Shown: positions 5,001 through 64,000 of the stretch, in pieces
Position numbering within the stretch: position 1 is the stretch's first letter
How the letters are laid out: each line of letters begins with the position of its first letter
NCBI GenBank assembly: GCA_964247055.1
Contig: OZ176051.1
Coordinates: forward strand, 13,020,001 to 13,084,000
Source of the DNA: Paragordius varius
Taxonomy: Eukaryota > Animalia > Nematomorpha
Length of the DNA: 64,000 bases
Direction of reading: 5' to 3'
Position numbers and translations under genes: made by a program
Notes under the pieces: generated by a model
What the model was told of the DNA's origin: nothing
What the model saw: only the letters and a program-made list of their open reading frames with translations
Database searches by the model: none

Positions 5001-6268
5001 AATGTCTGAAATACTTAAAAATTATTAATAATTAACAATGCAAAACATAAAACACAAAAATCTAAAATCTACTTAAATTTTTATAAATATATATTTACCT
5101 GTTTTTTTTATTAGTAATAACAACTAAATAAAATTATAATACCAATATTATTTAATACAGGTATTTAGCATGTTGAAAAATATATATTATTAAATTTAGG
5201 AAGCATAAAAAATCTTAAAATACGTATTTTACTATTTATTAATTTATCAAAGATAAAAACCTATAAAATTCCGCATCTAAATACGTAACAATATTACAAA
5301 TGTTAACATAAATTGCTATAATATTCTCAAAATTTAACATTACAAAATATCCATCAAATTAAAGCCTATCTTAATTCCCACGTCAATCCTCTTTCATATG
5401 TGTACTACGAAATAATTTCGTGGGTCAGTATTTTACGCATTTGATAAACCATTTATGTTATTTGGCAGGCAATAAAATTACTTAACATACATTAAAATGC
5501 ATACTGTAATTGAAAAAATGGTATATAACGACAGCTACTTACACTTAACTTTTTCTTTTGGCATCTATATAAACATCAAAAGATAAAACATAAAGATACT
5601 AATGAAAAACCCCATTATTATTAATTAATAATTAACATTAGTATAAAAGGGATAAAAATTATTAACACACAATTATTTAATTAATATCTCATCACCAAGA
5701 AAAAAGTTAATCTGACCACATCAAAGAGAAAGTAAAAAAGTTACATATTAATATTTCACATTAAGGAAAATGTTTATTTCTCAAGTGGTTTATTATTATT
5801 TAATGTTATACCCTATATGTAAAACACTTTTTTATAACATTACATTAACAGGTACGACGATACAATACAATAATAAACAAATGGTTAAAATATAAAAACT
5901 GTAAAATTTATCAAATAAATTTTTACAATTATTCTCATGAGTACACCAAAAATATTTTTCAATTATTATTGATCCTAAATTTTAAACTAAATGTCATTTA
6001 TAATTCAAGGAGTCACAGATAAAAATATTTCAATTTTTTGAATATCTTGATAAAGCTTTAGGGTATATACAAAAATGCCATTAGTAAAGTCAAAATAATG
6101 ATAATAAGGAACAAATGTCTTTTTTAGGTACTACTTGTTATATACGACCAACAAGCAACATTGTATGTATGTAATCCATTATCTAATTAATTTTTTTTAA
6201 GACTAAAAATGTATGTAAAAAAAATATAAATAAATCAAAGAATTTCAAGCAAATAAAATAATTCTAAC

Positions 6269-9945: not shown

Positions 9946-9959
9946 TTTAAACATTTATA

Positions 9960-14618: not shown

Positions 14619-14691
14619 ATGTGGATGTGTGGAAAGCAGTTAAACACTTTTGTGTTTAGCATGCTAATGTTATTGTCTTTCCAGGCTTTAA
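14619..14691 (+). CDS. First coding exon, signal peptide
   Basis: MWMCGKQLNTFVFSMLMLLSFQAL then A|gtaagt (consensus donor). Phase 1 joins exon 14819. Confidence 0.75.
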
Positions 14692-17600
14692 GTAAGTTGC
14701 TCCTTATAAAATTACCAACCATATATTTTTGAAACCAAATAATTTAAATTTAATATTTGTAAAAATCTTAAACATTGTTGATGGCCCAATTTTTATAATT
14801 TTATTTACCACCTTTTAGACATTAGCAGTGTTAATCATAAAATTTGCGATGTCGTAACCAAAGACGGTGATTACGATCTTAACGATATCGTGGATTCCTA
14901 TTCACCCCATTGCCAGTAATTTTTAATAATATTATTAATAAAAAAATTTTAAATAGAATTTGGGTATTTTTTGAATGTTTTTGTTAAAAAATAATTTTAA
15001 CTCATTTTTTGAAAAATTTAAGTGGTTGATAACCATCTGCAATAGAAGTTTCAATTATTTTATTTGTTGTTGTATAAATATTGTAGCCGTCGGCCTCTTT
15101 CTAAGAAATTAATTAAAATGAATTAATACTAAATTCTTATTAAGTTTTCTAAACCTCTAGTTAACATAATTAGATTTTTTATATTATTAATTCAAATGTA
15201 TATTTAGATTTTGTGTAAGTGAAAAGCAAATCTTTCTTTTCTCTTTTATCCATAAAATTTAGATAATATATTGGGATATGATAATCAAGAATGAATAATA
15301 TATAAATATATTGTTTGTATAATTAGGGGTAAATTACCATTGGAGAGACGAAATAGCACAATCATATGGCGCATTCCAAGGGAGGACATCTTTGATCAGA
15401 AGTTCGCCTACAGCGTCATGACGACAATCTATTTCCTTCGGACCGAATTTAACATCAGTGTTTATGCTGATGCTAACGTAATTTATACATATCTAACTAA
15501 CTAATTACCTAAGTTTTTTTAATTTTAAAAATACTACCTCTAAAAAATATATCATTTTTCCACAATTTTAAATTGTAAGGGGCCTGAGAATAATTAGTAT
15601 ATATAGACATTGGAAATTTTCAACATTTCATCGCTTTACTGCTTCGCGGAAACTTCCGATTTACCAATTATAAAATTATTATGGGTTTTTTTACAAATGA
15701 ATAAAAAATCTATATAGAATTAAAATTAAAATAATGCAATTTGTTACATAACGCTTAAACAAAAGGTGTGATGTTTTATGAACATAATCTTTAAAAAACA
15801 TTATAGAACGCAGCCATATTAAAATTATGGGAACTAACCTTAAACTTAATATTATCTGTATTTTCATAAAACAGTAAAGAATATATTATAAATTGGTAAA
15901 TCGAAAAAAATAACTGTTTAAATCAGATTTTTCTCCCTTTCTTTATACGCTAAAAATTTCCTGTACGACTACTTTCTTATATTCTTTTACACATTTTACT
16001 TTATTTGCCAATTCAAGCACAATTAGACATTAGAAGTTATTCATTAATTTTTGCCAGATAGATTATATAACAAAGAACAAAAATAAGAAGTTTTTTCACT
16101 TTACAATTATTAGCCAATAATAATAATTTCTTAGTAGAATATGCGATCCGGCAATAATTAATAAAGAAATTAGCCATTTATTCTTACACGTAGTATACAT
16201 CATAAAAAATATGTATTATAATTTTGTTTGAAAAATTGGATTAAACAGCTCACAATGAACCTTGACCTGTTTTGTGTATTAACGAAAATCGTAGGGTAAT
16301 TGCCCAAAATAAAAATTGGATAAAATTACTAGGTTTATTTGTATATCTATTTCTGACCTTGATCTCTTTTATTTGCAATACCCCTCCCCCCCCTTTCTAT
16401 AAACTATGAATTGACTAAAGGGTAATTTAAATTGTAAGGTCGCGTTTGCTTGGTACCCTCTTTATAATATTGTTTATTTAATAGTTCAATGGTATGTACC
16501 TGCAAAGAAAGAGGGCTATAATAGAATCAAATATAATTATATAAGTTATTTGATTAATATATATATAAATAGATTTTTCGCAGAGAATGGTTCACTAAAA
16601 ATTATATTTAAGGCAAATATTGATTATTATTCAAACCATTGTCCATTTGATAGTGAAATCATTAATAATTAAATGCAAAATTAATTTTAAAAAGTATAAA
16701 AGTTATATAATCAAAGAATATACTTACACAGGATCTATTTATTTTAGGATGATAAAATGGCTTTTAATATTAATAAAACGCATAGTATCATAAGGAAAGT
16801 ATTTACAAATTCTCATAAATGTTAGCAGTTTTTTAATCGCATATAAAAGTTTCATTTTCAAAACTTAACTTCAAATTATTACTCTATTATATTTCAATTT
16901 CTGTGTATGAAGTGGCAAATCCAATAATATGCAAAACGGTTTTAAAAATAAATAGGAAATCTGATTGAGTAACTAACATAATAGATATATCAATAAAAAT
17001 TTTATCAGTTATATATGGATATGATCTACACAGTATTAATGTAATTAGGATTAATTCTATACATACCATGAATTAAAAATTAACCTTAATTTTTTAAAAG
17101 TTGATATTTAATTTGGTTTAAAAGCAAAGGTGAAATTTTTTTGGAAATATGTTTCAATAAAAAATATATAAAAAATAGGTTGGTGGGTATCTTGCATAGT
17201 CTTAAAATATATCATGAAATTTGTCATATGATCTAAAAAAATTTTACCAGTTTAATTAGATAATTCAAAAACAATTAATGATGCTAATAATTTAAACTAA
17301 AAACTTGCTATAATTTAATTTAGACTAAATTAATTAAATGTAATTAACTATCTATTCTAGCATATAATAAATTTTTAATAATTATTTGGCTAAATATTTT
17401 TTTAAACATTTTTGAAGTTTATAGTCTGCATAAATAAATTTTCGAAATTTAAATGTTAACATTATTTAGCACACTCGGATAAATTTTTATAAAGCCCTAA
17501 GCCATTTTCAATTATTTGAAATTATCAATCATTAAAAATAAATACCGTTTGAATTGCGAAAAAACGCCTTACACTTACCCTAAAATTATCTTTAATATTG

Positions 17601-20600
17601 AAATTAAATTCATAATCACTTGTAATTGGTATCATTAATGTTATAGTTTAAATTTAAAGTAAATCTCCAATTGACTGAATATTAAACCAAAAATAAATGC
17701 CAAAATGATCTTAAATTCATATTATATAATATTTTTGTACTATGAAAAACATGTTGTTGAGTAAATGTGCATGGCTAGTTTTTTAATAAATTTAGCCAGA
17801 TAGCATACGCAGCAGAGAGCATTTTAATTAGCTAATGCCCACTAAAAAGCGAAAAAATAACTATAGCCCAATTATATTGGTGTTTCCTTTCGTACGTTAT
17901 CCTAAACAACTAGCACTGTATATTTACTACTGTATTTTAAACGATTATTTTACTTTTTGTTCTTTTGGTCCCAATTCATAGCAACCGTTTACCACTTGTA
18001 TGTAGCTTTAAATTATAAATAGTTGTAAAACCATGTATAAATTTAAGATTTAAAAAGTAATTATAATTTATAATGTGCTTGCATTCATAGTATTTAGCTG
18101 TTTATATTTAAAAATAATATAAATGAGTTCAGGGGCGCCTAACAAAACCTTTATTTATTATAACATAAATACACTTTATATTATTTTATATTTATATAGT
18201 TCGCTCTTGAGGCCTTGCCTAACCCTCCGCAAATCAGGAAGGTGGCATTTTGTCGTCTCGTTGTGGACGATGATGTGTTCCAAGATTGTTTCTACCCTAG
18301 CCAAGTTCGAGATATCGTAAGCCAATTTTTTGATATATCTCTTAACAATTTCTAAAAATTAAATATAGATGCTTAATTCCTGACAAACCCCTTTTTTGTG
18401 ATGAACTTTAAACTCTAAATTACTCTTGATAACTGTCTTTCAATAGGTTTGAAAATCATTTGCAAGGGGTAATATAAATAAAATTCGCTGGAACCGACTA
18501 ATATACCTAAAAAATGTACGCTATATATATATGCATGCAATATATGACACTCTAAAATGAAATAAAATTCATTAGAAAACGCTCCGTCAATTGAATACCT
18601 CGATCGAAGCCACGCCCGCTGATGCTATATCAACTCCCCTGGACAACAGCTATATAATTCGTGCAAACAAAGAAGTGTATAACTTGATTGGTGGTCAATA
18701 TCAAATCAATGTTATAATTGCCGAATGTGATGGTAAAATTTATATATTGATTGCTTTTTCCTGTTAGAAACTGTATTAATAGTACCATCTAAATTAATTT
18801 TATATTATTTTATATGTCTAGCTGCACCAACAATCGGTAGTATTTTAATTAAAAATGACAAATATTGAATTGGTCAACTTTTGTCCAAATCTTAAGACGA
18901 AAAAATTCAATTATTTTATTGAAACAAATTATGTTAATATTTGTTATGTTATCAAATTGCATCACTAAAAAACAATACCCATATTAAAATATTTTTCAAC
19001 GAGAATGGTATAAATAGAAAATAATTGGCTAGTAAATATGGACAAAATATTTTAGATTAAACATTTAATATGGAAATAAATAAATATAAATTTTTTTAGA
19101 AACAACAACAGAACCAACACCAACCCCCATTATTACCACTGAAAGACCAATAGGTAATTGATAATAAAATTTTTTGAAATAATTTGATGCCAAAATGTGA
19201 TTTTTTTCTAATATACCCATTTAACTGATTTTCATATTTTACTGTACCGAGCATATCGAGCATTATAATAGGCCACATCTCTATATTAAATCCCTAAGGG
19301 TATTTACATGTCAGCCGCAGTATATGAGATTTTTGTTTTAATTAATTACTTATAAATTAAACACTATTTTTTCTCCTGAACACAATAAGTAACTCCTAAA
19401 AATGAAAAATCTCATATATGGCTACTGAAATTAGTTAGCTTTTTAACCATTTAAAAGACAAAAATAGCCTTTTTACTGCAATCAAATATAGGCTAATATG
19501 TAGTTAAATATGAAAATTGTTTTTACATCAAGATGATAAGTTTAATCTAAAATCAAAGATAAAAATATCTCAATTTAATATTTTAGAAACAACAACAGAA
19601 CCAACACCAACCCCCATTATTACCACTGAAAGACCAATAGGTATTTGATAATAAAAATTTTTGAAATAATTTGATGCCAAAATGCGATTTTTATAATATA
19701 ACCATTACTAGTGTAACTGATTGTTTTATATTTTACAGTAACGAGCACTATTATAGGCAACATCTCTATATTAAATGGAGGGCATTTAAAGTGGCCATAT
19801 ATAACTTCTGTTTTTATTTGTAACTTTTATATTATTCACTGTATTTTTTCTCCTCAATCACAATAAGCTACTAAAAATCTCATACATGGCTACTGAAATT
19901 AATTACCATTTTAGCCATTTAAAATACAAACATAGCCTTTAATTTACTAAAAATATAGGCTATTATGTAGTTAAATATAAAAATTGTTTTTACAGATGAT
20001 AAGTTTAATCTAAAATAATCAAATATAACAATATTTTAACTTGATATTTTAGAAACAACAACAGAACCTACTCCAACCCCCATTATTACTACCGAAAGAC
20101 CAATAGGTATTTGATAATAAAAAATTTTAAAATGATGCCAAAATGCAATTTTTTCTAATATAACCATTAATTTAACAGTCTAACTGATTTTTTATTTTTG
20201 GTTATAAGAAAAATATTATATAAGGATTCTAATGATGCGTTTTTTGGGGCCGACAGTTTATCAAAGTTAAATCCACTTGTGTATTTGTCAACCAAATAGA
20301 ATGATTTAAAGCATTTTGAAAATTAGATGCCGAGATTGTGGAAACTTTACACATGCTATTTTATTAAATATTTGTATTAAACAAATAATTTTTGATTTCA
20401 TTAAATTTACGGGTACTTTCCTACCCAATAATATATTTTAATATAAACTACAAATACCGATACGATTGGATTAAATTGAAACACATGCATTGATGTTGAT
20501 AAAATAATTTATCGATGAAATAATATTTTAAAAATGTAAAATTACTAATTAACTGACAAATTTAAATAAATTAATTGTAAAAAAAATTATTATCAGTTTA

Positions 20601-23600
20601 TTATTCAGTTTAATAGCACAGGGCAATTAAAAAAATCGCTTTTATATAGTACTTATGATATTGGATCTTTATGGTTAAAAAATAAAATTAAAAAAATCTT
20701 GATCTCAATGAGTCGTTTTTTAATATTTTTAACCAACTTAAGAACTGAGCAAAGAAAAATATATTATGGTAAAAATAAAATTTAATTCATCTGTCAAGTG
20801 CTGTAAATTTCTTTAGAATTTAACTGTTTTTCTAAAATATAATTATAATTTCTATAATAATGAGGTTGTGAGATATAATTTATCATGTTTACATAAAATC
20901 TTTAAAGGTAATTGTTACCGAGGACTTCTTTAATTTCCACTTTAAAACCCAACTGTCTCCCTAACATGAGACAAATTAAATATCTTAAACATAATTTTTT
21001 TCAAAAGTCAGTTAGATAGATGGTTCAGACTTCGCTTGCTGAAAAATAGTGGCTTACGGGCTAACTTTTAATCGTGATTATGCATTATATAGATAATTAT
21101 ATCTTAGATATTATATAAAAATAGCATCATTAGTACCCTGACTTTTATATCATATGATGAGATAATATAAAAACGAACTTGATTAACTCAGCCTTACGAC
21201 AGAATAATGTAAAGATCGTAAGTTATGACGGGAATTAATTCATGGTTATAAAACTCCGAATCTGGAGTCCTGACATTTTCCATCCATTTACTTTCTAAAG
21301 ATATTTAATAATTTCTAATTTTAATAATTTTTATAATTCATAGAAACAACAACAGAACCAACGCCAACACCCATAATTACTACTGAACGACCAATCGGTA
21401 TATTTAATTCTTAATATATTTATAACATATATAATTAAGAATCAATTTTAAAATAATTATTTGGTTATATAAATTTTACACATAGAAACAACAACAGAAC
21501 CAACACCCACACCTGTACTTACCACAGAATGGACCCTAGGTTATAAATTTAAAGCATTATTTAAAACAATGATTTAATAAAATTAACACTTGTGGGATAT
21601 AAAATATATTCTAGTGTAATGAATAAAAATATTTTAAAAGTACAAATGATATCATCACATAACTTGAATGTAAATCATAGCGACACACAATTCTCTAAAA
21701 TTTAAATTATATATGGGCATGTGCTCGATTTTTGATAGATTGATAATAAAATTTTGTTATTTTAAAATTGATATTATTAATTCATATTTCTGAAGTGATA
21801 TAATCATGAGAAAATTTTTTATAAAGATGGTTTCCAGGATGCTCCAAAAATACAATAAAATACGTTTTAATCTAAAATTTAAAAGTATATTATGCATCTT
21901 TTGATAATGTTTTTATTGATATATTAATATGCATATGGCTCTCGCACTTTGATATATCGTTTATTCTGAAAATTTTCTATATCCATTTCGGCGCCTAATG
22001 TATAATTGAAAAATTTAATACATTATCAGGACTGATGTATTTTAAAAATAAATATATATCTAAATTTTGTGGACATTGTGTAACATACATTTTTGTTTGT
22101 TCCTCATTATATGAAAACTTTTTTTTCAATAAAATATTAAATTTTCCCTACTAACTAAAACTATTTGAACTTTAAATAGCTAAGAAAAACATAAAAATGT
22201 ATTATAATATAATGAATTATAGTTTAATTATTTATGTTGATTTATGATAAAATCCAATATAAGTTAGCCTTTGTTTTTAAATACTGTCAAGATAGAACTT
22301 TGTAAAATTAAAAAAATATTATAAATATATAATATCAATTGTAATATTTTAGATAATTCCTTATTAAATTTTTGCGTTACCCCAAATTAAATTTAATTTA
22401 CCTATATTATTTATTTACATTTTATATAATTTGTATAAATGTATAGAATCACCATCTGGAAATGAAACTACTCCATGTAAGGACTTTTAAATTTAAATAT
22501 TTATTTAAAATATTTATGATATGAATTATATTTTTTTAAATTTTTTTATTTAAGTACCCTCTACAACATGGCCAAGTAATTTATCCAAAACTTAAATATA
22601 TTAATATTTTTATATGTTAATAATTAATATATATTTTAACTTTTATCTTATAGCATTACCTACGCTGCCAACAGGTTTGAATGCATTATAGTTTTTTATT
22701 AAATTAACACTTGAATACAACACATTCATTTCAATCCTTCGATTTAATTTGGGGTCGTTGGATACCCCAAGCTTGTTTATTATTAATATACCATTTACAG
22801 TTCAAGTTCACCCTTAAACAATTCAAATTCACCCTTGAACAATTCAAAATCACCCTCGAACAATTCAAATTCACCTTCAAATAAATAACATATTTTTTAA
22901 GCTTAAAAATTACCTATATTTTAATATATTTTTAAAAAATAAATTTTGTTTTAAATTAAAATAATACTGAAAATAATAATTAATTATACCATAAAGATAT
23001 ATTTTATATTAATAATGAGTTATATTAGTTCGAAAACACATAATTTATTTTTAGGGTGAATTTGAATTGTTCGAGGGTGAATTTGAACTGTAAATGGTAT
23101 ATTTTAAAAAATAAGTATGTTTTTTAATGATTTGCATATATGACATTAAAGTAGGATTCACAAAAGTGTATGGAAAAAAGAAAGGAAAAAATTGCTTATT
23201 CAACACATTGTTGTTTTTTCCATACACTATTGTGTTGCCAATTTCCCAACTCTAGTGTGAAATAAGCAATAGAATGCATATTGTATTGTTATATGTAATT
23301 TTAATAAAAAACTAAACTTAATTTTAGCCTTAAAATTAAACAAAGATATATAGCAAAAATATAATGAAGCCTCGAAGTAATTTGATACGGAACTTTTTCA
23401 AAATTTAATTTTATTAATTTTTTTACATTGTTTTTATTTGGATAGTAGCAAAAATTTAAATTATACCGTTTCTTTCAATAATTTTAAATATCAACTTAAA
23501 TATTGCCTGGGGTATTTAACCCCAATTTGGATGGAAGTGTTAATATTTCAAATATAAACATTAACTTTTTTGTTAAAATTTTAGGCAATACAGATCAAAC

Positions 23601-25920
23601 AACAAGTCCTGGACGTAATAATTATTATTTTATTGGCATTTCTCTTTATTTTTTAGATTATATTCAATGCATATTTTAACTTATTCTCATATTTAGCTGG
23701 TGTGTGTGATTTAGTTACAAAAAATGGAATATACAATCTTAAGGACTTGGTTAGTTCGCCTTCATTGAACAGCAAGTAATAACCTTATATTTTTCAAATA
23801 TATATTCAATAAATAATTTTTGTTTTCTTGAATAATTTACGGTAAACTCATTTTATTCCATATATATATATATATATTGCCCACGCATAATATTAGTATT
23901 GAAGTCAGCGTAGAACGAAACAATATGCAGCAGTTAATTGCTGTCCTACCCAACAATGATGTCTTTAACATTTATGATGGCAATAATGACACCGATTCTG
24001 AAACTCATCTCCGGGCTTACAATTTCCTGACCACGATCCTTTTTATGCGCTCCAAATTTTACGTTGAACTTATGGCCGACAGTGATGTAAAACATTTTTA
24101 TAATAAACTAAAGAAAATTAGTATTTGCTATAGGGTTTGTTGGCAGCTAGTATTGCATACTATTAATATTTTAAGTTAATAATAATACTATGTACAGTAA
24201 ATTAATTTAGTTGAAAGCGTCTCGATATACTTCCCAAACTTCTAGGATTTTAAGTTAAGATTAAACTACAGGTCTTCAAAATCTGAATTATGATGAGAAA
24301 TTGTAAATCTTTTAAAAGATTTGGTTGGTGATAAGGTACATCATATTTACATCTTCAGAGTAAAGCTAATAAATATTAAGCTAACACAACCCCCTAAAAT
24401 AACTGTCTCAGAAAAAAGAGAGTAGAGATAATAACGAAAATCCTAGAAGGTTGGGAAGTATATCTACTTGAGACACTTTCAACCCTTTTCAAGGATAGTA
24501 ATTCACAATTCAAATTCACCCTTAAACAATTCAAACCACCCTTGAACGATTCAAACTCTCCCATAAACAATTCAAATTCACCCTAAAACAAAACATTTGT
24601 TTTTTTAAGATTAAAAATTATCTATATTTTTTACAATTTAATTTTTAGAAAGTTTGTTTAAAAATTAAAATTATCCTAAAAAATTAAAAAAACCAAGCTT
24701 ATATCATTTAATAATGAGTTGTATTAGCCCGAAAGTTAATTTTTTTAGGGTGATTTTTCAGATATACTTATTATATTATACTGTTTTATCTGCTTTTAAA
24801 ATTTTATGCGTATTTTTTGCATTCTCTAGTTGGAATTAATTAGAAAGGAAACGAGCGATCAAACTTCAATAGCTTTATGCTGGATTGTGTACGATTCTAA
24901 CCCTACCCTCAGATCTGAATGCCTATATCCACAAGAATTATATCAAATTGTAATTATTATTAAGACTTTTAAAATTTTATTTATTTTTGTTTTTATTGCC
25001 CGAATGTTAAATGTAAATAATAACATTTATAATAAGCGGATAAACACGTTTTCATTCTTTTCTTCATGATCGTGTTTTTTTGTTTTATATTTGAATTCTC
25101 GCATTTGAGTGCTAACAAGCATTAAAATAATCTCTGAAAAAAAAAAGATTATTTTAATTTATTTTTGCATTACAAAATTAATATAATAATGTAATACGGA
25201 ATTTTCAATTATATCTGACAATTTACATAATTTTTTGCCTTTTGATTGTAGATAAGTGTAAAACAATACCCCACCCATGTTGAAATAAAGAAACAAAAAA
25301 CGAATGGTATCGTTACTGAACGCGTTGAAAACGTTTTCATTATGAGAGTTAACATGAAATTTTTCAATGTTAAAGGCCATTCACATGAGCTAAGATTGAA
25401 GTTTATTGATTGTTCCGGTAAGTTTTTGGAATGTAATTAAAATCATTTTTTTTAAGGATAATATTTTAGTATGGGACAATTTTTTTTGATTATTATAAAA
25501 TCTAAACTCCTAATTTATGTATATATATATTAGTTTTCACAACAACGACCCAGGAAATCGGTACATATTTCGTATAGTTTATTTTTTATAAACATATTCA
25601 ATCACATTAATATTTTAATTTTTATATATTATCTGTGTCAAATAATATGTTATAGTTTACACTTCAACTTTGGAATCAACTGTTTCAGATGTAACAATAA
25701 CAGTACCAAGCGGTATAATTTTATTTTTATAAATATATACTATGTAATAATTTTGTAAAAATTTGATATAGTTTAGTATATTTAGCCACTATAATTTCTT
25801 TTTTAAAAAATAAATTCGTTTTTTCTTGAAATTTTATTTTGAATCTCCTATAATTGATTGATTGAGAGAAATGATTTTCTACATTTTGCGGGTGAAAAAT
25901 AGAAGTTTTGGCAAAGTTTT

Positions 25921-25975
<55 letters not shown>

Positions 25976-31783: not shown

Positions 31784-31814
<31 letters not shown>

Positions 31815-52800: not shown

Positions 52801-55800
52801 CGCCATCCGGTCAAACAACTCCATCTGGTCAAACAACTCCTTCAGGTCAAACTACACCATCAGGAGTGACCACACCATCGGGTGAAACTACACCCTCTGG
52901 TCAAACAACGCCGTCTGGTGAAACGACTCCTTCAGGTGCAACTACACCTTCCGGTCAAACAACGCCATCAGGTCAAACCACTCCTTCAGGTCAAACTACA
53001 CCATCTGGTCAAACCACTCCATCAGGTGCTACTACGCCCTCTGGTCAAACAACTCCATCAGGTGCTACTACACCTTCCGGTCAAACAACTCCATCCGGTC
53101 AAACAACTCCTTCAGGTCAAACTACACCATCTGGTCAAACCACTCCATCAGGTGCTACAACGCCTTCAGGAGAAACAACGCCATCCGGTCAAACAACTCC
53201 ATCTGGTCAAACAACTCCTTCAGGTCAAACTACACCATCAGGAGTGACCACACCATCGGGTGAAACTACACCCTCTGGTCAAACAACGCCGTCTGGTGAA
53301 ACGACTCCTTCAGGTGCAACTACACCTTCCGGTCAAACAACGCCATCCGGTCAAACCACTCCTTCAGGTCAAACTACACCATCTGGTCAAACCACTCCAT
53401 CAGGTGCTACTACGCCCTCTGGTCAAACAACTCCATCAGCTGCTACTACACCTTCCGGTCAAACAACTCCATCCGGTCAAACAACTCCTTCAGGTCAAAC
53501 TACACCATCTGGTCAAACCACTCCATCAGGTGCTACAACGCCTTCAGGAGAAACAACGCCATCCGGTCAAACAACTCCATCTGGTCAAACAACTCCTTCA
53601 GGTCAAACTACACCATCAGGAGTGACCACGCCATCGGGTGAAACCACTCCATCAGGTGCTACTACGCCTTCTGGTCAAACAACTCCATCAGGTGCTACTA
53701 CGCCTTCAGGTCAAACAACACCATCTGGTCAAACCACTCCATCAGGTGCTACTACGCCTTCTGGGGAAACAACGCCATCCGGTCAAACAACTCCATCTGG
53801 TCAAACAACTCCCTCAGGTCAAACTACACCATCTGGTGTAACCACTCCATCAGGTGCAACTACACCTTCCGGTCAAACAACTCCATCTGGTCAAACAACT
53901 CCCTCAGGTCAAACTACACCATCTGGTGTAACCACTCCATCAGGTGCAACTACACCTTCCGGTCAAACAACTCCATCTGGTGAAACAACTCCTTCAGGAC
54001 AAACCACTCCATCTGGCCAAACTACACCTTCTGGTGAAACCACTCCATCTGGTCAAACAACGCCCTCTGGTCAAACGACTCCATCAGGTGAAACTACTCC
54101 ATCTGGTGTGACTACACCATCTGGTCAAACAACTCCTTCAGGACAAACCACTCCATCTGGTGTTACAACGCCATCCGGTCAAACAACTCCATCTGGTCAA
54201 ACAACTCCCTCAGGGCAAACTACACCATCTGGTGTAACCACTCCATCAGGTGCAACTACACCTTCCGGTCAAACAACTCCATCTGGTGAAACAACTCCTT
54301 CAGGACAAACTACACCATCCGGAGCTACCACGCCATCGGGTGCAACTACACCTTCCGGTCAAACAACACCATCTGGTCAAACGACTCCTTCAGGTCAAAC
54401 CACACCATCTGGCCAAACTACACCTTCTGGTGTAACCACTCCATCTGGTCAAACAACGCCCTCCGGTCAAACGACTCCATCAGGTGAAACTACTCCATCT
54501 GGTGTAACTACACCATCTGGTCAAACAACTCCTTCAGGACAAACCACTCCATCTGGTGTTACAACGCCTTCCGGAGCTACCACGCCATCCGGTGAAACTA
54601 CGCCTTCTGGACAAACCACTCCATCAGGTGCTACTACACCTTCCGGTCAAACTACCCCATCTGGTGCAACAACACCATCTGGTGAAACAACGCCCTCCGG
54701 TCAAACCACTCCATCAGGTGTAACGACGCCATCCGGACAAACAACTACTTGTCCGCCAAGTATTAAAAATATTTTTATAAAATTTTAGCCATTGATATAT
54801 GTGAATTGGTGACGGAAAACGGTAATTACAGTTTGAGTGACTTAGTTGGGTGCACGTCTCCCTCTTGCAAGTATATTTACCTTTCTAAAAATTTATTAGG
54901 GATGATATTTATTTGGAACGCGATGGCGACAAAATTATATGGCCAATTGACAATCAAGACATCTTTGGTGTATTTAATCCATCTGACGAAGACCAAGAAG
55001 AATTATATCAAACTCTCACCATTCTTTTCTACCTTAAAACAAAATTCAATCTAACATTTATTGCGGATAGCAATGTAAGTCATATTACACAAACATTTAT
55101 AAATATGAAATGTAAAACGTCCAATATATATGACATAATTTTTTTGAATATTTAGCTTGTATTGGTAACAAAACCTAACATCACGGATTACAATGAAATA
55201 GCAATTTGCAGTCTTTTCATTGAAAAGGATATCTATTCTGATTGCCTGTACCCACAAGATATTGAAGATAAGGAAATAGTATATAATATATGTTAACATT
55301 GTATAGAAACAAATCGAACAATTACAAAATGGAATCAAAATTACGACTAATGACGGCAATGAAAAAATTATCGAAAATGCTTTTGTCATTCGCGCTAACA
55401 AAGATGTTTTCGAAGTTTCTGGGGACAAACACAAGCTCAATATTGTCTTGATTGACTGTGCAAGTAAGATTCATAATGAAATATCGAAAAATATTGTTAT
55501 CAGTAAATAGTTGTTTCATGCATTTATATTTGTTTTTCATATTAATACAGATGTAACGACAACAGGTATTTCTTGATTTTATTAATTTTTTAGTTGTGAC
55601 GCCAACGACGACAGGATCACCTTTCAATACAACAACAACGGCTTCAACACCTATAACCACACCATCGGGACAAACAACTCCCTCTGGTCAAACGACTCCA
55701 TCAGGTGAAACAACTCCATCTGGTGTAACTACACCATCTGGTGTTACAACGCCTTCAGGGGAAACCACGCCCTCTGGAGCAACAACCCCATCTGGTCAAA

Positions 55801-58800
55801 CAACTCCTTCCGGCTTAACGACACCTTCTGGTGCAACGACTCCATCTGGTGTTACAACGCCTTCAGGAGCTACCACGCCATCTGGACAAACAACTCCATC
55901 AGGACAAACTACACCATCAGGAGCTACAACGCCATCAGGTGAAACTACACCTTCTGGACAAACAACTCCTTCCGGTCAAACCACTCCATCAGGTGCTACA
56001 ACGCCTTCAGGAGAAACAACGCCATCCGGGCAAACAACTCCATCTGGTCAAACAACTCCTTCAGGTCAAACTACACCATCAGGAGTGACCACACCATCGG
56101 GTGAAACTACACCCTCTGGTCAAACAACGCCGTCTGGTGAAACGACTCCATCAGGTGTAACTACACCTTCCGGTCAAACAACGCCATCAGGTCAAACCAC
56201 TCCTTCAGGTCAAACTACACCATCTGGTCAAACCACTCCATCAGGTGCTACTACGCCCTCTGGTCAAACAACTCCATCAGGTGCTACTACACCTTCCGGT
56301 CAAACAACGCCATCCGGTCAAACAACTCCATCCGGTCAAACCACTCCTTCAGGTCAAACCACTCCTTCAGGTCAAACCACTCCATCAGGTGCCACAACGC
56401 CTTCAGGAGAAACAACGCCATCCGGTCAAACAACTCCATCTGGTCAAACAACTCCTTCAGGTCAAACTACACCATCAGGAGTGACCACACCATCGGGTGA
56501 AACTACACCCTCTGGTCAAACAACGCCGTCTGGTGAAACGACTCCTTCAGGTGCAACTACACCTTCCGGTCAAACAACGCCATCAGGTCAAACCACTCCT
56601 TCAGGTCAAACTACACCATCTGGTCAAACCACTCCATCAGGTGCTACTACGCCCTCTGGTCAAACAACTCCATCAGGTGCTACTACACCTTCCGGTCAAA
56701 CAACTCCATCCGGTCAAACAACTCCTTCAGGTCAAACTACACCATCTGGTCAAACCACTCCATCAGGTGCTACAACGCCTTCAGGAGAAACAACGCCATC
56801 CGGTCAAACAACTCCATCTGGTCAAACAACTCCTTCAGGTCAAACTACACCATCAGGAGTGACCACACCAACGGGTGAAACTACACCCTCTGGTCAAACA
56901 ACGCCGTCTGGTGAAACGACTCCTTCAGGTGCAACTACACCTTCCGGTCAAACAACGCCATCCGGTCAAACCACTCCTTCAGGTCAAACTACACCATCTG
57001 GTCAAACCACTCCATCAGGTGCTACTACGCCCTCTGGTCAAACAACTCCATCAGCTGCTACTACACCTTCCGGTCAAACAACTCCATCCGGTCAAACAAC
57101 TCCTTCAGGTCAAACTACACCATCTGGTCAAACCACTCCATCAGGTGCTACAACGCCTTCAGGAGAAACAACGCCATCCGGTCAAACAACTCCATCTGGT
57201 CAAACAACTCCTTCAGGTCAAACTACACCATCAGGAGTGACCACGCCATCGGGTGAAACCACTCCATCAGGTGCTACTACGCCTTCTGGTCAAACAACTC
57301 CATCAGGTGCTACTACGCCTTCAGGTCAAACAACACCATCTGGTCAAACCACTCCATCAGGTGCTACTACGCCTTCTGGGGAAACAACGCCATCCGGTCA
57401 AACAACTCCATCTGGTCAAACAACTCCCTCAGGTCAAACTACACCATCTGGTGTAACCACTCCATCAGGTGCAACTACACCTTCCGGTCAAACAACTCCA
57501 TCTGGTCAAACAACTCCCTCAGGTCAAACTACACCATCTGGTGTAACCACTCCATCAGGTGCAACTACACCTTCCGGTCAAACAACTCCATCTGGTGAAA
57601 CAACTCCTTCAGGACAAACCACTCCATCTGGCCAAACTACACCTTCTGGTGAAACCACTCCATCTGGTCAAACAACGCCCTCTGGTCAAACGACTCCATC
57701 AGGTGAAACTACTCCATCTGGTGTGACTACACCATCTGGTCAAACAACTCCTTCAGGACAAACCACTCCATCTGGTGTTACAACGCCATCCGGTCAAACA
57801 ACTCCATCTGGTCAAACAACTCCCTCAGGGCAAACTACACCATCTGGTGTAACCACTCCATCAGGTGCAACTACACCTTCCGGTCAAACAACTCCATCTG
57901 GTGAAACAACTCCTTCAGGACAAACTACACCATCCGGAGCTACCACGCCATCGGGTGCAACTACACCTTCCGGTCAAACAACACCATCTGGTCAAACGAC
58001 TCCTTCAGGTCAAACCACACCATCTGGCCAAACTACACCTTCTGGTGTAACCACTCCATCTGGTCAAACAACGCCCTCCGGTCAAACGACTCCATCAGGT
58101 GAAACTACTCCATCTGGTGTAACTACACCATCTGGTCAAACAACTCCTTCAGGACAAACCACTCCATCTGGTGTTACAACGCCTTCCGGAGCTACCACGC
58201 CATCCGGTGAAACTACGCCTTCTGGACAAACCACTCCATCAGGTGCTACTACACCTTCCGGTCAAACTACCCCATCTGGTGCAACAACACCATCTGGTGA
58301 AACAACGCCCTCCGGTCAAACCACTCCCTCAGGTGTAACGACGCCATCCGGACAAACAACTACTTGTCCGCCAAGTATTAAAAATATTTTTATAAAATTT
58401 TAGCCATTGATATATGTGAATTGGTGACGGAAAACGGTAATTACAGTTTGAGTGACTTAGTTGGGTGCACGTCTCCCTCTTGCAAGTATATTTACCTTTC
58501 TAAAAATTTATTAGGGATGATATTTATTTGGAACGCGATGGCGACAAAATTATATGGCCAATTGACAATCAAGACATCTTTGGTGTATTTAATCCATCTG
58601 ACGAAGACCAAGAAGAATTATATCAAACTCTCACCATTCTTTTCTACCTTAAAACAAAATTCAATCTTACATTTATTGCGGATAGCAATGTAAGTCATAT
58701 TACACAAACATTTATAAATATGAAATGTAAAACGTCCAATATATATGACATAATTTTTTTGAATATTTAGCTTGTATTGGTAACAAAACCAAACATCACG

Positions 58801-61800
58801 GATTACAATGAAATAGCAATTTGCAGTCTTTTCATTGAAAAGGATATCTATTCTGATTGCCTGTACCCACAAGATATTGAAGATAAGGAAATAGTATATA
58901 ATATATGTTAACATTGTATAGAAACAAATCGAACAATTACAAAATGGAATCAAAATTACGACTAATGACGGCAATGAAAAAATTATCGAAAATGCTTTTG
59001 TCATTCGCGCTAACAAAGATGTTTTCGAAGTTTCTGGGGACAAACACAAGCTCAATATTGTGTTGATTGACTGTGCAAGTAAGATTCATAATGAAATATC
59101 GAAAAATATTGTTATCAGTAAATAGTTGTTTCATGCATTTATATTTGTTTTTCATATTAATACAGATGTAACGACAACAGGTATTTCTTGATTTTATTAA
59201 TTTTTTAGTTGTGACGCCAACGACGACAGGATCACCTTTCAATACAACAACAACGGCTTCAACACCTATAACCACACCATCGGGACAAACAACTCCCTCT
59301 GGTCAAACGACTCCATCAGGTGAAACAACTCCATCTGATGTAACTACACCATCTGGTGTTACAACGCCTTCAGGGGAAACCACGCCCTCTGGAGCAACAA
59401 CCCCATCTGGTCAAACAACTCCTTCCGGCTTAACGACACCTTCTGGTGCAACGACTCCATCTGGTGTTACAACGCCTTCAGGAGCTACCACGCCATCTGG
59501 ACAAACAACTCCATCAGGACAAACAACACCATCAGGAGCTACAACGCCATCAGGTGAAACTACACCTTCTGGACAAACAACTCCTTCCGGTCAAACCACT
59601 CCATCAGGTGCTACAACGCCTTCAGGAGAAACAACGCCATCCGGGCAAACAACTCCATCTGGTCAAACAACTCCTTCAGGTCAAACTACACCATCAGGAG
59701 TGACCACACCATCGGGTGAAACTACACCCTCTGGTCAAACAACGCCGTCTGGTGAAACGACTCCTTCAGGTGCAACTACACCTTCCGGTCAAACAACGCC
59801 ATCCGGTCAAACCACTCCTTCAGGTCAAACTACACCATCTGGTCAAACCACTCCATCAGGTGCTACTACGCCATCTGGTCAAACAACTCCATCAGGTGCT
59901 ACTACACCTTCCGGTCAAACAACTCCATCCGGTCAAACAACTCCTTCAGGTCAAACTACACCATCTGGTCAAACCACTCCATCAGGTGCTACAACGCCTT
60001 CAGGAGAAACAACGCCATCCGGTCAAACAACTCCATCTGGTCAAACAACTCCTTCAGGTCAAACTACACCATCAGGAGTGACCACACCATCGGGTGAAAC
60101 TACACCGTCTGGTCAAACAACGCCGTCTGGTGAAACGACTCCTTCAGGTGCAACTACACCTTCCGGTCAAACAACGCCATCCGGTCAAACCACTCCTTCA
60201 GGTCAAACTACACCATCTGCTCAAACCACTCCATCAGGTGCTACTACGCCCTCTGGTCAAACAACTCCATCAGGTGCTACTACACCTTCCGGTCAAACAA
60301 CTCCATCCGGTCAAACAACTCCTTCAGGTCAAACTACACCATCTGGTCAAACCACTCCATCAGGTGCTACAACGCCTTCAGGAGAAACAACGCCATCCGG
60401 TCAAACAACTCCATCTGGTCAAACAACTCCTTCAGGTCAAACTACACCATCAGGAGTGACCACGCCATCGGGTGAAACCACTCCATCAGGTGCTACTACG
60501 CCTTCTGGTCAAACAACTCCATCAGGTGCTACTACACCTTCCGGTCAAACAACTCCATCTGGTCAAACAACTCCCTCAGGTCAAACTACACCATCTGGTG
60601 TAACCACTCCATCAGGTGCAACTACACCTTCCGGTCAAACAACTCCATCTGGTCAAACAACTCCCTCAGGTCAAACTACACCATCTGGTGTAACCACTCC
60701 ATCAGGTGCAACTACACCTTCCGGTCAAACAACTCCATCTGGTGAAACAACTCCTTCAGGACAAACCACTCCATCTGGCCAAACTACACCTTCTGGTGAA
60801 ACCACTCCATCTGGTCAAACAACGCCCTCTGGTCAAACGACTCCATCAGGTGAAACTACTCCATCTGGTGTGACTACACCATCTGGTCAAACAACTCCTT
60901 CAGGACAAACCACTCCATCTGGTGTTACAACGCCATCCAGTCAAACAACTCCCTCAGGGCAAACTACACCATCTGGTGTAACCACTCCATCAGGTGCAAC
61001 TACACCTTCCGGTCAAACAACTCCATCTGGTGAAACAACTCCTTCAGGACAAACTACACCATCCGGAGCTACCACGCCATCGGGTGCAACTACACCTTCC
61101 GGTCAAACAACACCATCTGGTCAAACGACTCCTTCAGGTCAAACCACACCATCTGGCCAAACTACACCTTCTGGTGTAACCACTCCATCTGGTCAAACAA
61201 CGCCCTCCGGTCAAACGACTCCATCAGGTGAAACTACTTCATCTGGTGTAACTACACCATCTGGTCAAACAACTCCTTCAGGACAAACCACTCCATCTGG
61301 TGTTACAACGCCTTCCGGAGCTACCACGCCATCCGGTGAAACTACGCCTTCTGGACAAACCACTCCATCAGGTGCTACTACACCTTCCGGTCAAACTACC
61401 CCATCTGGTGCAACAACACCATCTGGTGAAACAACGCCCTCCGGTCAAACCACTCCATCAGGTGTAACGACGCCATCCGGACAAACAACTACTTGTCCGC
61501 CAAGTATTAAAAATTTTTTTATAAAATTTTAGCCATTGATATATGTGAATTGGTGACGGAAAACGGTAATTACAGTTTGAGTGACTTAGTTGGGTGCACG
61601 TCTCCCTCTTGCAAGTATATTTACCTTTCTAAAAATTTATTAGGGATGATATTTATTTGGAACGCGATGGCGACAAAATTATATGGCCAATTGACAATCA
61701 AGACATCTTTGGTGTATTTAATCCATCTGACGAAGACCAAGAAGAATTATATCAAACTCTCACCATTCTTTTCTACCTTAAAACAAAATTCAATCTAACA

Positions 61801-64000
61801 TTTATTGCGGATAGCAATGTAAGTCATATTACACAAACATTTATAAATATGAAATGTAAAACGTCCAATATATATGACATAATTTTTTTGAATATTTAGC
61901 TTGTATTGGTAACAAAACCAAACATCACGGATTACAATGAAATAGCAATTTGCAGTCTTTTCATTGAAAAGGATATCTATTCTGATTGCCTGTACCCACA
62001 AGATATTGAAGATAAGGAAATAGTATATAATATATGTTAACATTGTATAGAAACAAATCGAACAATTACAAAATGGAATCAAAATTACGACTAATGACGG
62101 CAATGAAAAAATTATCGAAAATGCTTTTGTCATTCGCGCTAACAAAGATGTTTTCGAAGTTTCTGGGGACAAACACAAGCTCAATATTGTCTTGATTGAC
62201 TGTGCAAGTAAGATTCATAATGAAATATCGAAAAATATTGTTATCAGTAAATAGTTGTTTCATGCATTTATATTTGTTTTTCATATTAATACAGATGTAA
62301 CGACAACAGGTATTTCTTGATTTTATTAATTTTTTAGTTGTGACGCCAACGACGACAGGATCACCTTTCAATACAACAACGGCTTCAACACCTATAACCA
62401 CACCATCGGGACAAACAACTCCCTCTGGTCAAACGACTCCATCAGGTGAAACAACTCCATCTGGTGTAACTACACCATCTGGTGTTACAACGCCTTCAGG
62501 GGAAACCACGCCCTCTGGAGCAACAACCCCATCTGGTCAAACAACTCCTTCCGGCTTAACGACACCTTCTGGTGCAACGACTCCATCTGGTGTTACAACG
62601 CCTTCAGGAGCTACCACGCCATCTGGACAAACAACTCCATCAGGACAAACTACACCATCAGGAGCTACAACGCCATCAGGTGAAACTACACCTTCTGGAC
62701 AAACAACTCCTTCCGGTCAAACCACTCCATCAGGTGCTACAACGCCTTCAGGAGAAACAACGCCATCCGGGCAAACAACTCCATCTGGTCAAACAACTCC
62801 TTCAGGTCAAACTACACCATCAGGAGTGACCACACCATCGGGTGAAACTACACCCTCTGGTCAAACAACGCCGTCTGGTGAAACGACTCCATCAGGTGTA
62901 ACTACACCTTCCGGTCAAACAACGCCATCAGGTCAAACCACTCCTTCAGGTCAAACTACACCATCTGGTCAAACCACTCCATCAGGTGCTACTACGCCCT
63001 CTGGTCAAACAACTCCATCAGGTGCTACTACACCTTCCGGTCAAACAACGCCATCCGGTCAAACAACTCCATCCGGTCAAACCACTCCTTCAGGTCAAAC
63101 CACTCCTTCAGGTCAAACCACTCCATCAGGTGCCACAACGCCTTCAGGAGAAACAACGCCATCCGGTCAAACAACTCCATCTGGTCAAACAACTCCTTCA
63201 GGTCAAACTACACCATCAGGAGTGACCACACCATCGGGTGAAACTACACCCTCTGGTCAAACAACGCCGTCTGGTGAAACGACTCCTTCAGGTGCAACTA
63301 CACCTTCCGGTCAAACAACGCCATCCGGTCAAACCACTCCTTCAGGTCAAACTACACCATCTGGTCAAACCACTCCATCAGGTGCTACTACGCCCTCTGG
63401 TCAAACAACTCCATCAGGTGCTACTACACCTTCCGGTCAAACAACTCCATCCGGTCAAACAACTCCTTCAGGTCAAACTACACCATCTGGTCAAACCACT
63501 CCATCAGGTGCTACAACGCCTTCAGGAGAAACAACGCCATCCGGTCAAACAACTACTTCAGGTCAAACTACACCATCAAGAGTGACCACACCATCGGGTG
63601 AAACTACACCCTCTGGTCAAACAACGCCGTCTGGTGAAACGACTCCTTCAGGTGCAACTACACCTTCCGGTCAAACAACGCCATCCGGTCAAACCACTCC
63701 TTCAGGTCAAACTACACCATCTGGTCAAACCACTCCATCAGGTGCTACTACGCCCTCTGGTCAAACAACTCCATCAGGTGCTACTACACCTTCCAGTCAA
63801 ACAACTCCATCCGGTCAAACAACTCCTTCAGGTCAAACTACACCATCTGGTCAAACCACTCCATCAGGTGCTACAACGCCTTCAGGAGAAACAACGCCAT
63901 CCGGTCAAACAACTCCATCTGGTCAAACAACTCCTTCAGGTCAAACTACACCATCAGGAGTGACCACGCCATCGGGTGAAACCACTCCATCAGGTGCTAC
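14619..64000 (+). CDS. Giant secreted mucin/proteoglycan-like gene (multi-exon, 3' end beyond window)
   Basis: All exons listed below splice in one frame with GT-AG boundaries. Summed exon length is about 29,970 nt (~9,990 aa) with no stop codon. Confidence 0.85.
14819..18732 (+). CDS. Cys-bracketed domain copy 1 (4 exons)
   Basis: join 14819-14915 (ICDVVTKDGDYDLNDIVDSYSPHC), 15327-15477 (LERRNSTIIWRIP...TTIYFLRTEFNISVYADAN), 18200-18316 (VAFCRLVVDDDVFQDCFYP), 18576-18732 (YIIRANKEVY...IIAECD). Phases 1-2-0-0-1. Confidence 0.85.
15655..15905. repeat. Small inverted-repeat (MITE-like) element in intron
   Basis: cgatttaccaatt at ~15657 is the reverse complement of aattggtaaatcg at ~15891. No TSD identified. 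Confidence 0.35.
18822..23614 (+). CDS. Thr/Pro linker 1: ten phase-1 micro-exons
   Basis: 18822-18836 (AAPTI); 54-nt exons 19100-19153, 19587-19640, 20053-20106, 21344-21397 (ETTTEPTPTPIITTERPI) and 21486-21539 (ETTTEPTPTPVLTTEWTL); 22447-22476; 22555-22575; 22654-22674; 23585-23614. All are flanked by AG/GT. Confidence 0.75.
19030..20160 (+). repeat. Tandem duplication (period 487/466 bp) of 54-nt exon plus intron
   Basis: Intron sequence flanking the first three ETTTEPTP exons is also repeated, including a short inverted repeat (tatatgagattttt...aaaaatctcatata, ~19320-19420). Confidence 0.85.
22708..23539. mobile_element. Possible TTAA-flanked non-autonomous element (piggyBac-like)
   Basis: TTAA|CACTT...AAGTG|TTAA, with sub-terminal ttggggt..ataccccaag mirrored at both ends. 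The terminal match is short. Confidence 0.35.
22787..23101. mobile_element. MITE with 21-bp subrepeats in its TIRs
   Basis: TIRs aatataccatttacagttcaa / ttgaactgtaaatggtatatt; repeats of ttcacccttaaacaattcaaa. A related copy lies at ~24505-24760. Confidence 0.65.
23697..25417 (+). CDS. Cys-bracketed domain copy 2 (4 exons)
   Basis: join 23697-23775 (VCDLVTKNGIYNLKDLV), 23897-24086 (AYNFLTTILFMRSKFYVELMADSD), 24830-24949 (IALCWIV...ECLYPQEL), 25252-25417 (ENVFIMRVN...FIDCS). Same phases as copy 1. Confidence 0.85.
24505..24760. mobile_element. Second, degenerate copy of the 22787-23101 MITE
   Basis: Same caattcaaattcaccct subrepeats and shared internal sequence; ends at ttttttagggtga. Confidence 0.55.
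25534..26014 (+). CDS. Thr-rich linker 2: three phase-1 micro-exons
   Basis: 25534-25560 (VFTTTTQEI), 25689-25712 (DVTITVPS), 25988-26014 (EGTTTVPIP). Confidence 0.7.
25924..25970. repeat. (TA)n microsatellite
   Basis: Longest pure AT run in the window. Shorter runs at 6505-6526, 13216-13235, 13785-13808 and 31787-31814. Confidence 0.95.
26127..27735 (+). CDS. Cys-bracketed domain copy 3 (4 exons)
   Basis: join 26127-26208 (ICDWMTQNGNYSI...ATC), 26647-26824 (LYLERVDQKITWII...KATSN), 27168-27281 (IAMCKIV...ECLYPEDL), 27573-27735 (ENSFITKLNKEAF...LKDC). Confidence 0.85.
26362..26580. mobile_element. 219-bp palindromic MITE, Tc1/mariner-type
   Basis: TA|CAGTCATGTATCC...GGATACATGACTC|TA. Arms of ~90 bp are complementary around a ~35-nt loop. 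Confidence 0.7.
27961..28026 (+). CDS. Linker 3 exon
   Basis: DESRTTTVSTTTSIMETTTCDP, phase 1-1. Its end parallels the TTTCPP end of the giant exons. Confidence 0.75.
28245..28704. mobile_element. hAT-superfamily MITE
   Basis: Starts CAGGGGTGTCAAAC and ends GGGTTACCCTG. Flanked by a perfect 8-bp direct repeat CTTTAGAC (28237-28244 and 28705-28712). Confidence 0.85.
29050..31779 (+). CDS. Cys-bracketed domain copy 4 (4 exons, two 23-nt introns)
   Basis: join 29050-29131 (PCEIVKSNGNYNLKKLVGCKSPSC), 31276-31453 (LYLERENGKVVWPI...FQTDSN), 31477-31590 (IMCLLFIEKHIFTDCYE), 31614-31779 (KNAYIVYLKRDEF...KECDVTTT). Confidence 0.8.
31853..32125. mobile_element. Degenerate hAT MITE
   Basis: Right end TTGGCCACCCCTG with sub-terminal cgcgggccgca, followed by gctataga. 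The left end is decayed (cgtataga precedes 31853). Confidence 0.4.
32140..34480 (-). mobile_element. Highly decayed non-LTR retrotransposon (LINE, RTE-like) remnant
   Basis: Minus-strand motifs in RT order: YRPTLCCNILRKLI (33169-33128), YFGHIKR (32305-32285), PDGNNRRGR (~32247-32221). Many stops; boundaries are approximate. Confidence 0.5.
34534..36594 (+). CDS. Giant repeat exon 1 (110 TTPSGx hexapeptides)
   Basis: tttag|TT GTG ACG...TGT CCG CCA A|gtatta; phase 1-1; ORF 34536-36623. Confidence 0.9.
36624..37400 (+). CDS. Cys-bracketed domain copy 5 plus NVTTT micro-exon
   Basis: join 36624-36705, 36735-36909, 36991-37113, 37142-37298, 37386-37400 (184 aa). Introns in the block are 29, 29, 81, 28, 87 and 28 nt. 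Confidence 0.85.
37429..40209 (+). CDS. Giant repeat exon 2 (150 hexapeptides)
   Basis: ORF 37431-40238 minus the terminal 29-nt intron. Confidence 0.9.
40239..41015 (+). CDS. Domain copy 6
   Basis: join 40239-40320, 40350-40524, 40606-40728, 40757-40913, 41001-41015. Confidence 0.85.
41044..43860 (+). CDS. Giant repeat exon 3 (152 hexapeptides)
   Basis: ORF 41046-43889 minus the terminal intron. Confidence 0.9.
43890..44666 (+). CDS. Domain copy 7
   Basis: join 43890-43971, 44001-44175, 44257-44379, 44408-44564, 44652-44666. Confidence 0.85.
44695..47511 (+). CDS. Giant repeat exon 4 (152 hexapeptides)
   Basis: ORF 44697-47540 minus the terminal intron. Confidence 0.9.
47541..48317 (+). 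CDS. Domain copy 8
   Basis: join 47541-47622, 47652-47826, 47908-48030, 48059-48215, 48303-48317. Confidence 0.85.
48346..51144 (+). CDS. Giant repeat exon 5 (151 hexapeptides)
   Basis: ORF 48348-51173 minus the terminal intron. Confidence 0.9.
51174..51950 (+). CDS. Domain copy 9
   Basis: join 51174-51255, 51285-51459, 51541-51663, 51692-51848, 51936-51950. Confidence 0.85.
51979..54759 (+). CDS. Giant repeat exon 6 (150 hexapeptides)
   Basis: ORF 51981-54788 minus the terminal intron. Confidence 0.9.
54789..55565 (+). CDS. Domain copy 10
   Basis: join 54789-54870, 54900-55074, 55156-55278, 55307-55463, 55551-55565. Confidence 0.85.
55594..58374 (+). CDS. Giant repeat exon 7 (150 hexapeptides)
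   Basis: ORF 55596-58403 minus the terminal intron. Confidence 0.9.
58404..59180 (+). CDS. Domain copy 11
   Basis: join 58404-58485, 58515-58689, 58771-58893, 58922-59078, 59166-59180. Confidence 0.85.
59209..61503 (+). CDS. Giant repeat exon 8 (123 hexapeptides)
   Basis: ORF 59211-61532 minus the terminal intron. Confidence 0.9.
61533..62309 (+). CDS. Domain copy 12
   Basis: join 61533-61614, 61644-61818, 61900-62022, 62051-62207, 62295-62309. Confidence 0.85.
62338..64000 (+). CDS. Giant repeat exon 9 (truncated by window edge)
   Basis: tttag|TT GTG ACG CCA. Open to 64000; lacks one ACA codon in the leader relative to the other units. Confidence 0.9.

Follow-up and report, generated by a model that had tools for sequence, protein, structure and literature searches.

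A stretch of 64,000 nucleotides from the hairworm Paragordius varius (GenBank assembly GCA_964247055.1, contig OZ176051.1, positions 13,020,001 to 13,084,000 of the forward strand; hereafter the window) carries a single gene whose product, in our reading, is a secreted mucin of no fewer than 10,000 amino acids (aa) in which small globular domains, the beads, act as cross-link nodes; we give this reading a probability of roughly 0.58. Exons were placed by hand and checked by script in an independent rebuild of an earlier model, and the 80-exon reading frame, a spliced frame predicted from genomic DNA, is confirmed. It runs on the plus strand from 14619 to the window edge at 64000, all 79 of its 79 introns are bounded by GT-AG, and its coding length of 30,002 nt makes up 10,000 codons without a stop, with the frame still open at 64000; the predicted chain of at least 10,000 aa would weigh about 0.98 MDa before sugars. 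Residues 8-29 are hydrophobic and contain the top 19-mer of the whole model (aa 11-29; Kyte-Doolittle value, KD, 1.68), and beyond this N-terminal leader the 10,000 aa seen hold no second hydrophobic or transmembrane (TM)-like segment. Hidden Markov models of the four exon classes that build the bead found exactly 12 copies of each and none beyond, and the hexapeptide TTPSGx occurs in 1,206 exact copies (x being Q in 668, A in 219, E in 177, V in 133 and L in 9). The initial annotation had described a signal-peptide exon, 12 domain copies, more than 1,200 hexapeptides and a stop-free frame of ~30 kb for a product of ~10,000 aa that was still open, and all of these counts were reproduced in the rebuild.

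The window is AT-rich DNA of animal type (GC 19-34%) up to ~34.5 kb and from there a periodic C-skewed array; in the 5' part the exons stand at 37.4% GC as against 22.6% in the introns. Among the diverged domains nucleotide differences are most frequent at codon position 3 (0.56-0.73), fewer at position 1 (0.38-0.59) and fewest at position 2 (0.28-0.40), and roughly half of the identical residues are encoded by different codons, a coding signature that rules out a non-coding satellite. Numbering the domains D1 to D12 in order, the intron phases 1-2-0-0-1 and the intron positions are kept in all five of D1-D5, with domain introns ranging from 23 to 2,722 nt across the diverged copies; the second internal intron alone measures 2,722, 743, 343, 23 and 81 nt from D1 to D5. 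Tiny introns, two of 23 nt and 32 of 28-29 nt, are found beside multi-kilobase introns of the same gene, and we take them to be real because those inside the domain share position and phase with the kilobase introns of sister domains. This is good internal evidence for spliceosomal introns of 23-29 nt, splicing being predicted from genomic DNA, and a scan of the long introns for missed micro-exons gave none that was convincing. An independent gene for each unit of the array is ruled out, as the units have no starts and stops of their own and lie 28 nt apart. The 81-nt domain intron at 40525-40605, 44176-44256 and 47827-47907 ends in an AAG acceptor and contains no stop in frame, and retention of these three copies would insert 27 aa (one Cys among them) with the frame of the domain intact. 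A TATA-like octamer lies at 14375-14382, ~240 nt 5' of the start codon, and carries little weight in such AT-rich DNA; a bacterial promoter scan was set aside as irrelevant for an animal gene.

The bead is a domain of ~175 aa. Copies D5-D12 are near-identical, while D1-D4 share 27-44% identity among themselves and with D5 and are connected through linkers rich in Thr and Pro, whose symmetric phase-1 micro-exons measure 15-66 nt. The earlier picture of globular domains spaced by ~900-aa rods accordingly holds for D5-D12, where modules follow one another every 949-1,123 aa, but not for the diverged, micro-exon-linked D1-D4. The Cys counts are 5, 4, 5 and 7 in D1-D4 and 7 in each of the eight remaining copies. 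All 12 domains keep four Cys; D1, D3, D4 and D5-D12 have a fifth where the first domain exon (exon a) ends, and D4-D12 have another two that occur together; the last domain exon (exon d) of D5 ends with H-x8-C spacing. The count is odd in 11 of the 12 modules, which in a secreted protein implies a spare thiol per bead and suggests that chains may be cross-linked by disulfides between these domains instead of through VWD domains.

Relatives of the bead were found only in hairworms. Searched exon by exon, it had no match in Pfam, NCBIfam or the PDB sequences, and none there to the fibrinogen-C/COLFI or galectin/ConA families even at E 10. Metagenome contigs and plasmids gave no match, Rfam gave none for window positions 1-37500, and the open reading frames of the window were absent from the protein collection by exact look-up. 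Two other homologue queries were blank, namely the contiguous stretch 40351-40728 (exon b, the in-frame 81-nt intron and exon c) and alignment A12, whose profile shrank to 84 positions. A profile of exon b run against 1.84 billion proteins gave two matches. XP_065322587.1, named 'mucin-22-like' in Gordionus sp. m RMFG-2023, was matched at E 2e-8, and its domain as query retrieved one further protein only, XP_065322575.1 (uncharacterized LOC135929787) of the same species; a match to a shuttle craft-like protein of the shrimp Palaemon (P0001) was rejected as spurious, an acidic repeat having produced it. Exons a, b and d align in the same order with the Gordionus domains, most strongly for D5, and the exon-d profile aligns to the Gordionus domain with an hhalign probability of 88% (E 2.8e-6). 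Like the Paragordius gene, the two Gordionus proteins repeat a homologous ~185-aa Cys-bounded domain between Thr/Ser-rich linkers; unlike it, they exist as predictions of 1,090 and 692 aa with a fragmentary appearance, share identity in short stretches only, have no hexapeptide rods and place the inner Cys pair differently. The sequence searches would thus define an unnamed family restricted so far to nematomorphs, with two hairworm RefSeq proteins as the only relatives found, in agreement with the earlier proposal that the protein is lineage-specific.

Following an intron of 2,754 nt, eight cassettes of 2.9-3.65 kb stand in tandem, in each of which a giant rod exon (686-938 aa) precedes the domain in its four exons and an exon of 15 nt; the introns measure 28, 29, 81 and 87 nt. 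Their 849-bp non-rod blocks each differ from the first block at 3-6 sites. Units 3 and 4 are identical across 3,651 bp, which leaves some doubt about the precise number of copies; the remaining pairs of units differ by 2-18 substitutions, mostly together with indels of 18n nt, and the variants are distributed among blocks in mosaic patterns that fit recombination. Within one rod, codon positions 1 and 2 of T-T-P-S have zero entropy and third positions carry 1.4-1.8 bits; 90 distinct 18-mers occur among 1,227 units, and every gap or indel between units of 3.1-3.65 kb is a multiple of 18 nt. The array may have arisen as a rod-and-domain cassette of ~3.6 kb, frame-neutral from phase 1 to phase 1, was multiplied through gene conversion or unequal crossing-over. 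Read along its sixth residue, the hexapeptide falls into repeats of higher order, 21-22 units in length (378/396 nt), as at 37429-40209, that are common to all rods, and the rods would therefore have grown by nested duplication before the cassette multiplied.

Windows with a high content of proline, threonine and serine (PTS) cover 8,110 of the 10,000 aa (81%) at thresholds of more than 40% S+T and more than 5% P after PTSpred, which bears out the description of the product as a giant mucin-like protein. Rod 2, for example, has 464 S+T and 154 P in 926 aa, together with 22 acidic residues and no K or R. Such uncharged Thr/Ser/Pro rods would be densely O-glycosylated with N-acetylgalactosamine (GalNAc) and stiffened into spacers, and since mucin rods as a rule of thumb extend ~0.25 nm per residue, each could reach roughly 200-250 nm. 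The bead is probably beta-rich, acidic and N-glycosylated and may be held by two conserved disulfides, one from first to last Cys and one closing a short inner pair, with the spare Cys free to join beads of neighbouring chains. The beads would then sit at even intervals as cross-link nodes in a hydrated gel or coat, a role that CysD/VWD domains fill in vertebrate mucins, and the period of ~1,100 aa would set its mesh size. Body-surface mucus, the matrix of egg strings or the wall of larval cysts are likely uses; a mucus-like coat has been reported on some adult hairworms, which also make egg strings and clear cyst walls (PMC7311483). Searches of the paper collection used turned up no study that connects hairworm transcriptomes with mucins and nothing on the hexapeptide.

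The alternation of globular domains with PTS tracts is a known mucin layout, seen in the CysD/PTS and SEA/PTS combinations (PMC4948705). The hairworm model resembles MUC2, MUC5AC and MUC5B as a giant and presumably secreted protein with long single-exon PTS tracts and interspersed small Cys domains (PMC4948705, PMC1552070), but it has neither the N-terminal VWD-C8-TIL (no Pfam match exon by exon, and only 4-7 Cys per module) nor the WxxW of CysD, which is absent from the whole model; its bead is unrelated to theirs by sequence and a cystine-knot end is not visible in the window. The six-Cys chitin-binding domain CBM14 is likewise without a Pfam match, the Cys of the bead being spread over ~175 aa, and the absence of all three domain types noted in the initial annotation is upheld by these searches. 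The SEA/PTS mucins share the alternation of bead and rod without VWD (PMC4948705), but the hairworm bead, at ~175 aa and predicted to be mostly beta, is not SEA, having no Pfam match and no GSVV. Dumpy of Drosophila, an ecdysozoan matrix protein of giant size, has ~40 repeats that are nearly identical and evolve in concert, and its C-terminus carries a ZP/TM end (PMC2930355). Like the hairworm product as predicted, it is multi-exon and extracellular and has a tandem array whose copies are held alike through unequal crossing-over (PMC2930355), but the 10,000 aa seen here contain no EGF, DPY or ZP modules and the hairworm unit is a multi-exon cassette of 1,100 aa, introns included. Chicken Muc13 has one PTS repeat per exon (PMC1552070), as do the five 54-nt exons of linker 1, but is a small SEA/TM mucin, whereas the hairworm gene combines micro-exon and giant-exon PTS. 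The claim of an undescribed system is accordingly weakened: the layout is known for mucins (PMC4948705) and RefSeq already names the Gordionus relative 'mucin-22-like', while the bead is new. What appears novel is the hairworm-restricted unnamed bead, the extreme size and a possible cross-linking through the spare Cys. A broader proposal, that hairworms independently invented a gel-forming mucin with a phylum-specific domain of new fold, one free Cys as a regularly spaced covalent node, a chain of 10,000-15,000 aa, no VWD or cystine-knot machinery and dozens of 23-29-nt introns, we regard as tentative and on the whole doubtful.

Several points weigh against a secreted mucin with beads as nodes. 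Expression and transcription as one gene are predictions; the C-terminus lies beyond the window and could bear a membrane anchor; the disulfide pairing is a guess; exon c has no significant match to the Gordionus domain; and the number of Cys is even in the Gordionus domains, with six per domain in the paralogue, so the spare Cys would be specific to this gene and not family-wide. A giant apical matrix tether anchored in membrane or cuticle, Dumpy-like or like a transmembrane mucin, with a TM, glycosylphosphatidylinositol (GPI) or ZP end past the window, would suit both the missing C-terminus and an array homogenised as in the Dumpy repeats; we nonetheless hold it to be unlikely, as the 10,000 aa seen give no EGF, DPY, SEA or ZP match and the model contains no furin-type RxK/RR, GSVV or GDPH site. 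Improbable, too, and compatible with a mucin, is the idea that the bead has a known fold in much diverged form, of the fibrinogen-C/COLFI clan or a galectin/ConA-type beta-sandwich, in a multivalent string that binds glycans or matrix. We modelled the fold on the Gordionus homologue with the exon pieces of the window as alignment rows, and the outcome, one of five models, was mainly of beta structure, with one helix at the N-terminus and another in the centre, but weak, with a predicted local distance difference test (pLDDT) score of 57.8 and a predicted template modelling (pTM) score of 0.47. In this pLDDT-58 model the fibrinogen-like chains span the whole length (residues 2-182) and, of all the weak VIA rows, align over the most residues (Z 3.3-3.6, 106-122 residues; 1n86_C at Z 3.6 with 122 aligned at a root-mean-square deviation of 4.2, and also H-ficolin, Angptl3 and FGL1), galectin/ConA-type sandwiches match part of it (galectin-like rows over residues ~60-172), atlas features lean weakly toward Methyltransf_FA/glucanase-like clusters (0.87), and three features, C...GxYxL near the N-terminus, a helix and then a strand in mid-domain, and G...C at the end, may echo the fibrinogen/COLFI pattern. 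Against this, the best VIA Z is 4.5 and none reaches 5, all Foldseek E values exceed 0.001, atlas template modelling (TM) scores are at most 0.36 by query, the Pfam, NCBIfam and PDB searches at E 10 reached no such family, and the collagen C-propeptide is absent among the matches listed. With so weak a model, neither a new nor a known fold is shown. A half-domain folded from a single sequence was unusable (pLDDT 41), its atlas feature matches to endonuclease clusters were dismissed as noise, and an internal two-fold repeat hinted at by mis-alignments was rejected at hhalign probabilities of 1.2% and 0.6%.

The gene could be real and its product much shorter or of fewer units, if transcripts stop or skip in the array or if the assembly holds too many copies. 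The identity of units 3 and 4 speaks for this, each unit is frame-neutral and hence skippable, and retention of the 29-nt intron that follows each rod, which contains ATTAAA, leads to an immediate stop; but the other pairs of units differ in mosaic patterns unlike a simple assembly duplication, AATAAA is absent throughout 34000-64000, and the units, 28 nt apart, have no ATG, signal or stop of their own, so that we consider a shortened product quite unlikely. Much the least probable is a proteoglycan core protein, a possibility raised at the outset, in which ~1,200 Ser-Gly sites bear glycosaminoglycan chains. Ser-Gly is the minimal xylosylation site and the model has 1,220 such dipeptides, but D+E make up just 2.4% of the rods, none of the 148 Ser-Gly in rod 2 has three or more D/E inside 8 residues, and Thr-Thr-Pro is a context characteristic of mucin-type glycosylation. 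Because the Ser-Gly sites are without the usual acidic neighbours, GalNAc-type glycosylation is the better inference for the Ser/Thr of the rods than glycosaminoglycan, and the proteoglycan proposal is weakened.

If expressed as modelled, the secreted mucin would be of very large size and a candidate for a component of the mucus, the egg-string matrix or the cyst matrix in hairworms, and spare-Cys nodes at fixed spacing would offer a testable alternative to VWD-based mucin polymerisation. The nematomorph domain family defined here has no name as yet, and its ~180-aa unit should be open to expression and structure solution; its paralogous domains within one gene also serve as internal evidence on very short spliceosomal introns. 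Coordinates are collected in Table 1.

Table 1. Predicted exons, domains and array units of the Paragordius varius gene (window coordinates).
Feature	Position	Strand	Detail
Exon 1, ATG and ~24-aa signal-peptide-like segment	14619..14691	+	hydrophobicity (KD 1.68)
Domain D1, four exons	14819..18732 (14819-14915, 15327-15477, 18200-18316, 18576-18732)	+	5 Cys
Linker 1, ten symmetric phase-1 micro-exons	18822..23614	+	15-54 nt
Linker 1, five Thr/Pro-rich repeat exons	start 19100, 19587, 20053, 21344, 21486	+	54 nt each
Domain D2, four exons	23697..25417	+	4 Cys (sole even-numbered module)
Linker 2, three phase-1 micro-exons	25534..26014	+	27, 57, 27 nt
Domain D3, four exons	26127..27735	+	5 Cys
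Linker 3, Thr-rich exon	27961..28026	+	66 nt; Cys at end directly before D4
Domain D4, four exons	29050..31779	+	7 Cys counting linker Cys
D4 introns, two	31454-31476, 31591-31613	+	23 nt each
Rod exon 1	34534..36594	+	686 aa, 105 exact hexapeptides
Domain D5 and 15-nt exon	36624..37400 (36624-36705, 36735-36909, 36991-37113, 37142-37298)	+	
Introns around and within D5	around and within 36624..37400	+	29, 29, 81, 28, 87, 28 nt
Seven more tandem rod-and-domain units	37429..62337	+	>99% identical
Rod exons of the seven units	start 37429, 41044, 44695, 48346, 51979, 55594, 59209	+	
Domains D6-D12	start 40239, 43890, 47541, 51174, 54789, 58404, 61533	+	
Rod exon 9	62338..64000	+	553 aa so far, cut by window edge

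The DNA around the gene holds several repeat-like features. Two degraded retroelement copies lie inverted at 8121-11984, with arms 89-96% complementary; the fragments look Penelope-like from motifs resembling reverse transcriptase (RT) and GIY-YIG, and in Pfam they match RVT_1 alone, at E 0.15. The Gordionus montsenyensis paper reports that Penelope elements are lacking. A near-perfect palindrome of ~4.3 kb at ~1200-5510 (arms 81-98% complementary, centre near 3480) carries a 116-118-bp tandem repeat in each arm and resembles a foldback transposon. On the minus strand at 1-498, a 166-codon open frame runs off the window start with a weak DUF6483 match (E 0.044) and is possibly an exon of a neighbouring gene. 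Inside the gene, intron 31 has at ~33000-34500 a T-skewed segment of higher GC with short minus-strand frames, blank in Pfam and perhaps a decayed mobile element, and introns 14 and 17 (22797-23100 and 24505-24760) each hold a copy of a small element that has inverted ends and a tandem repeat of 21 bp.

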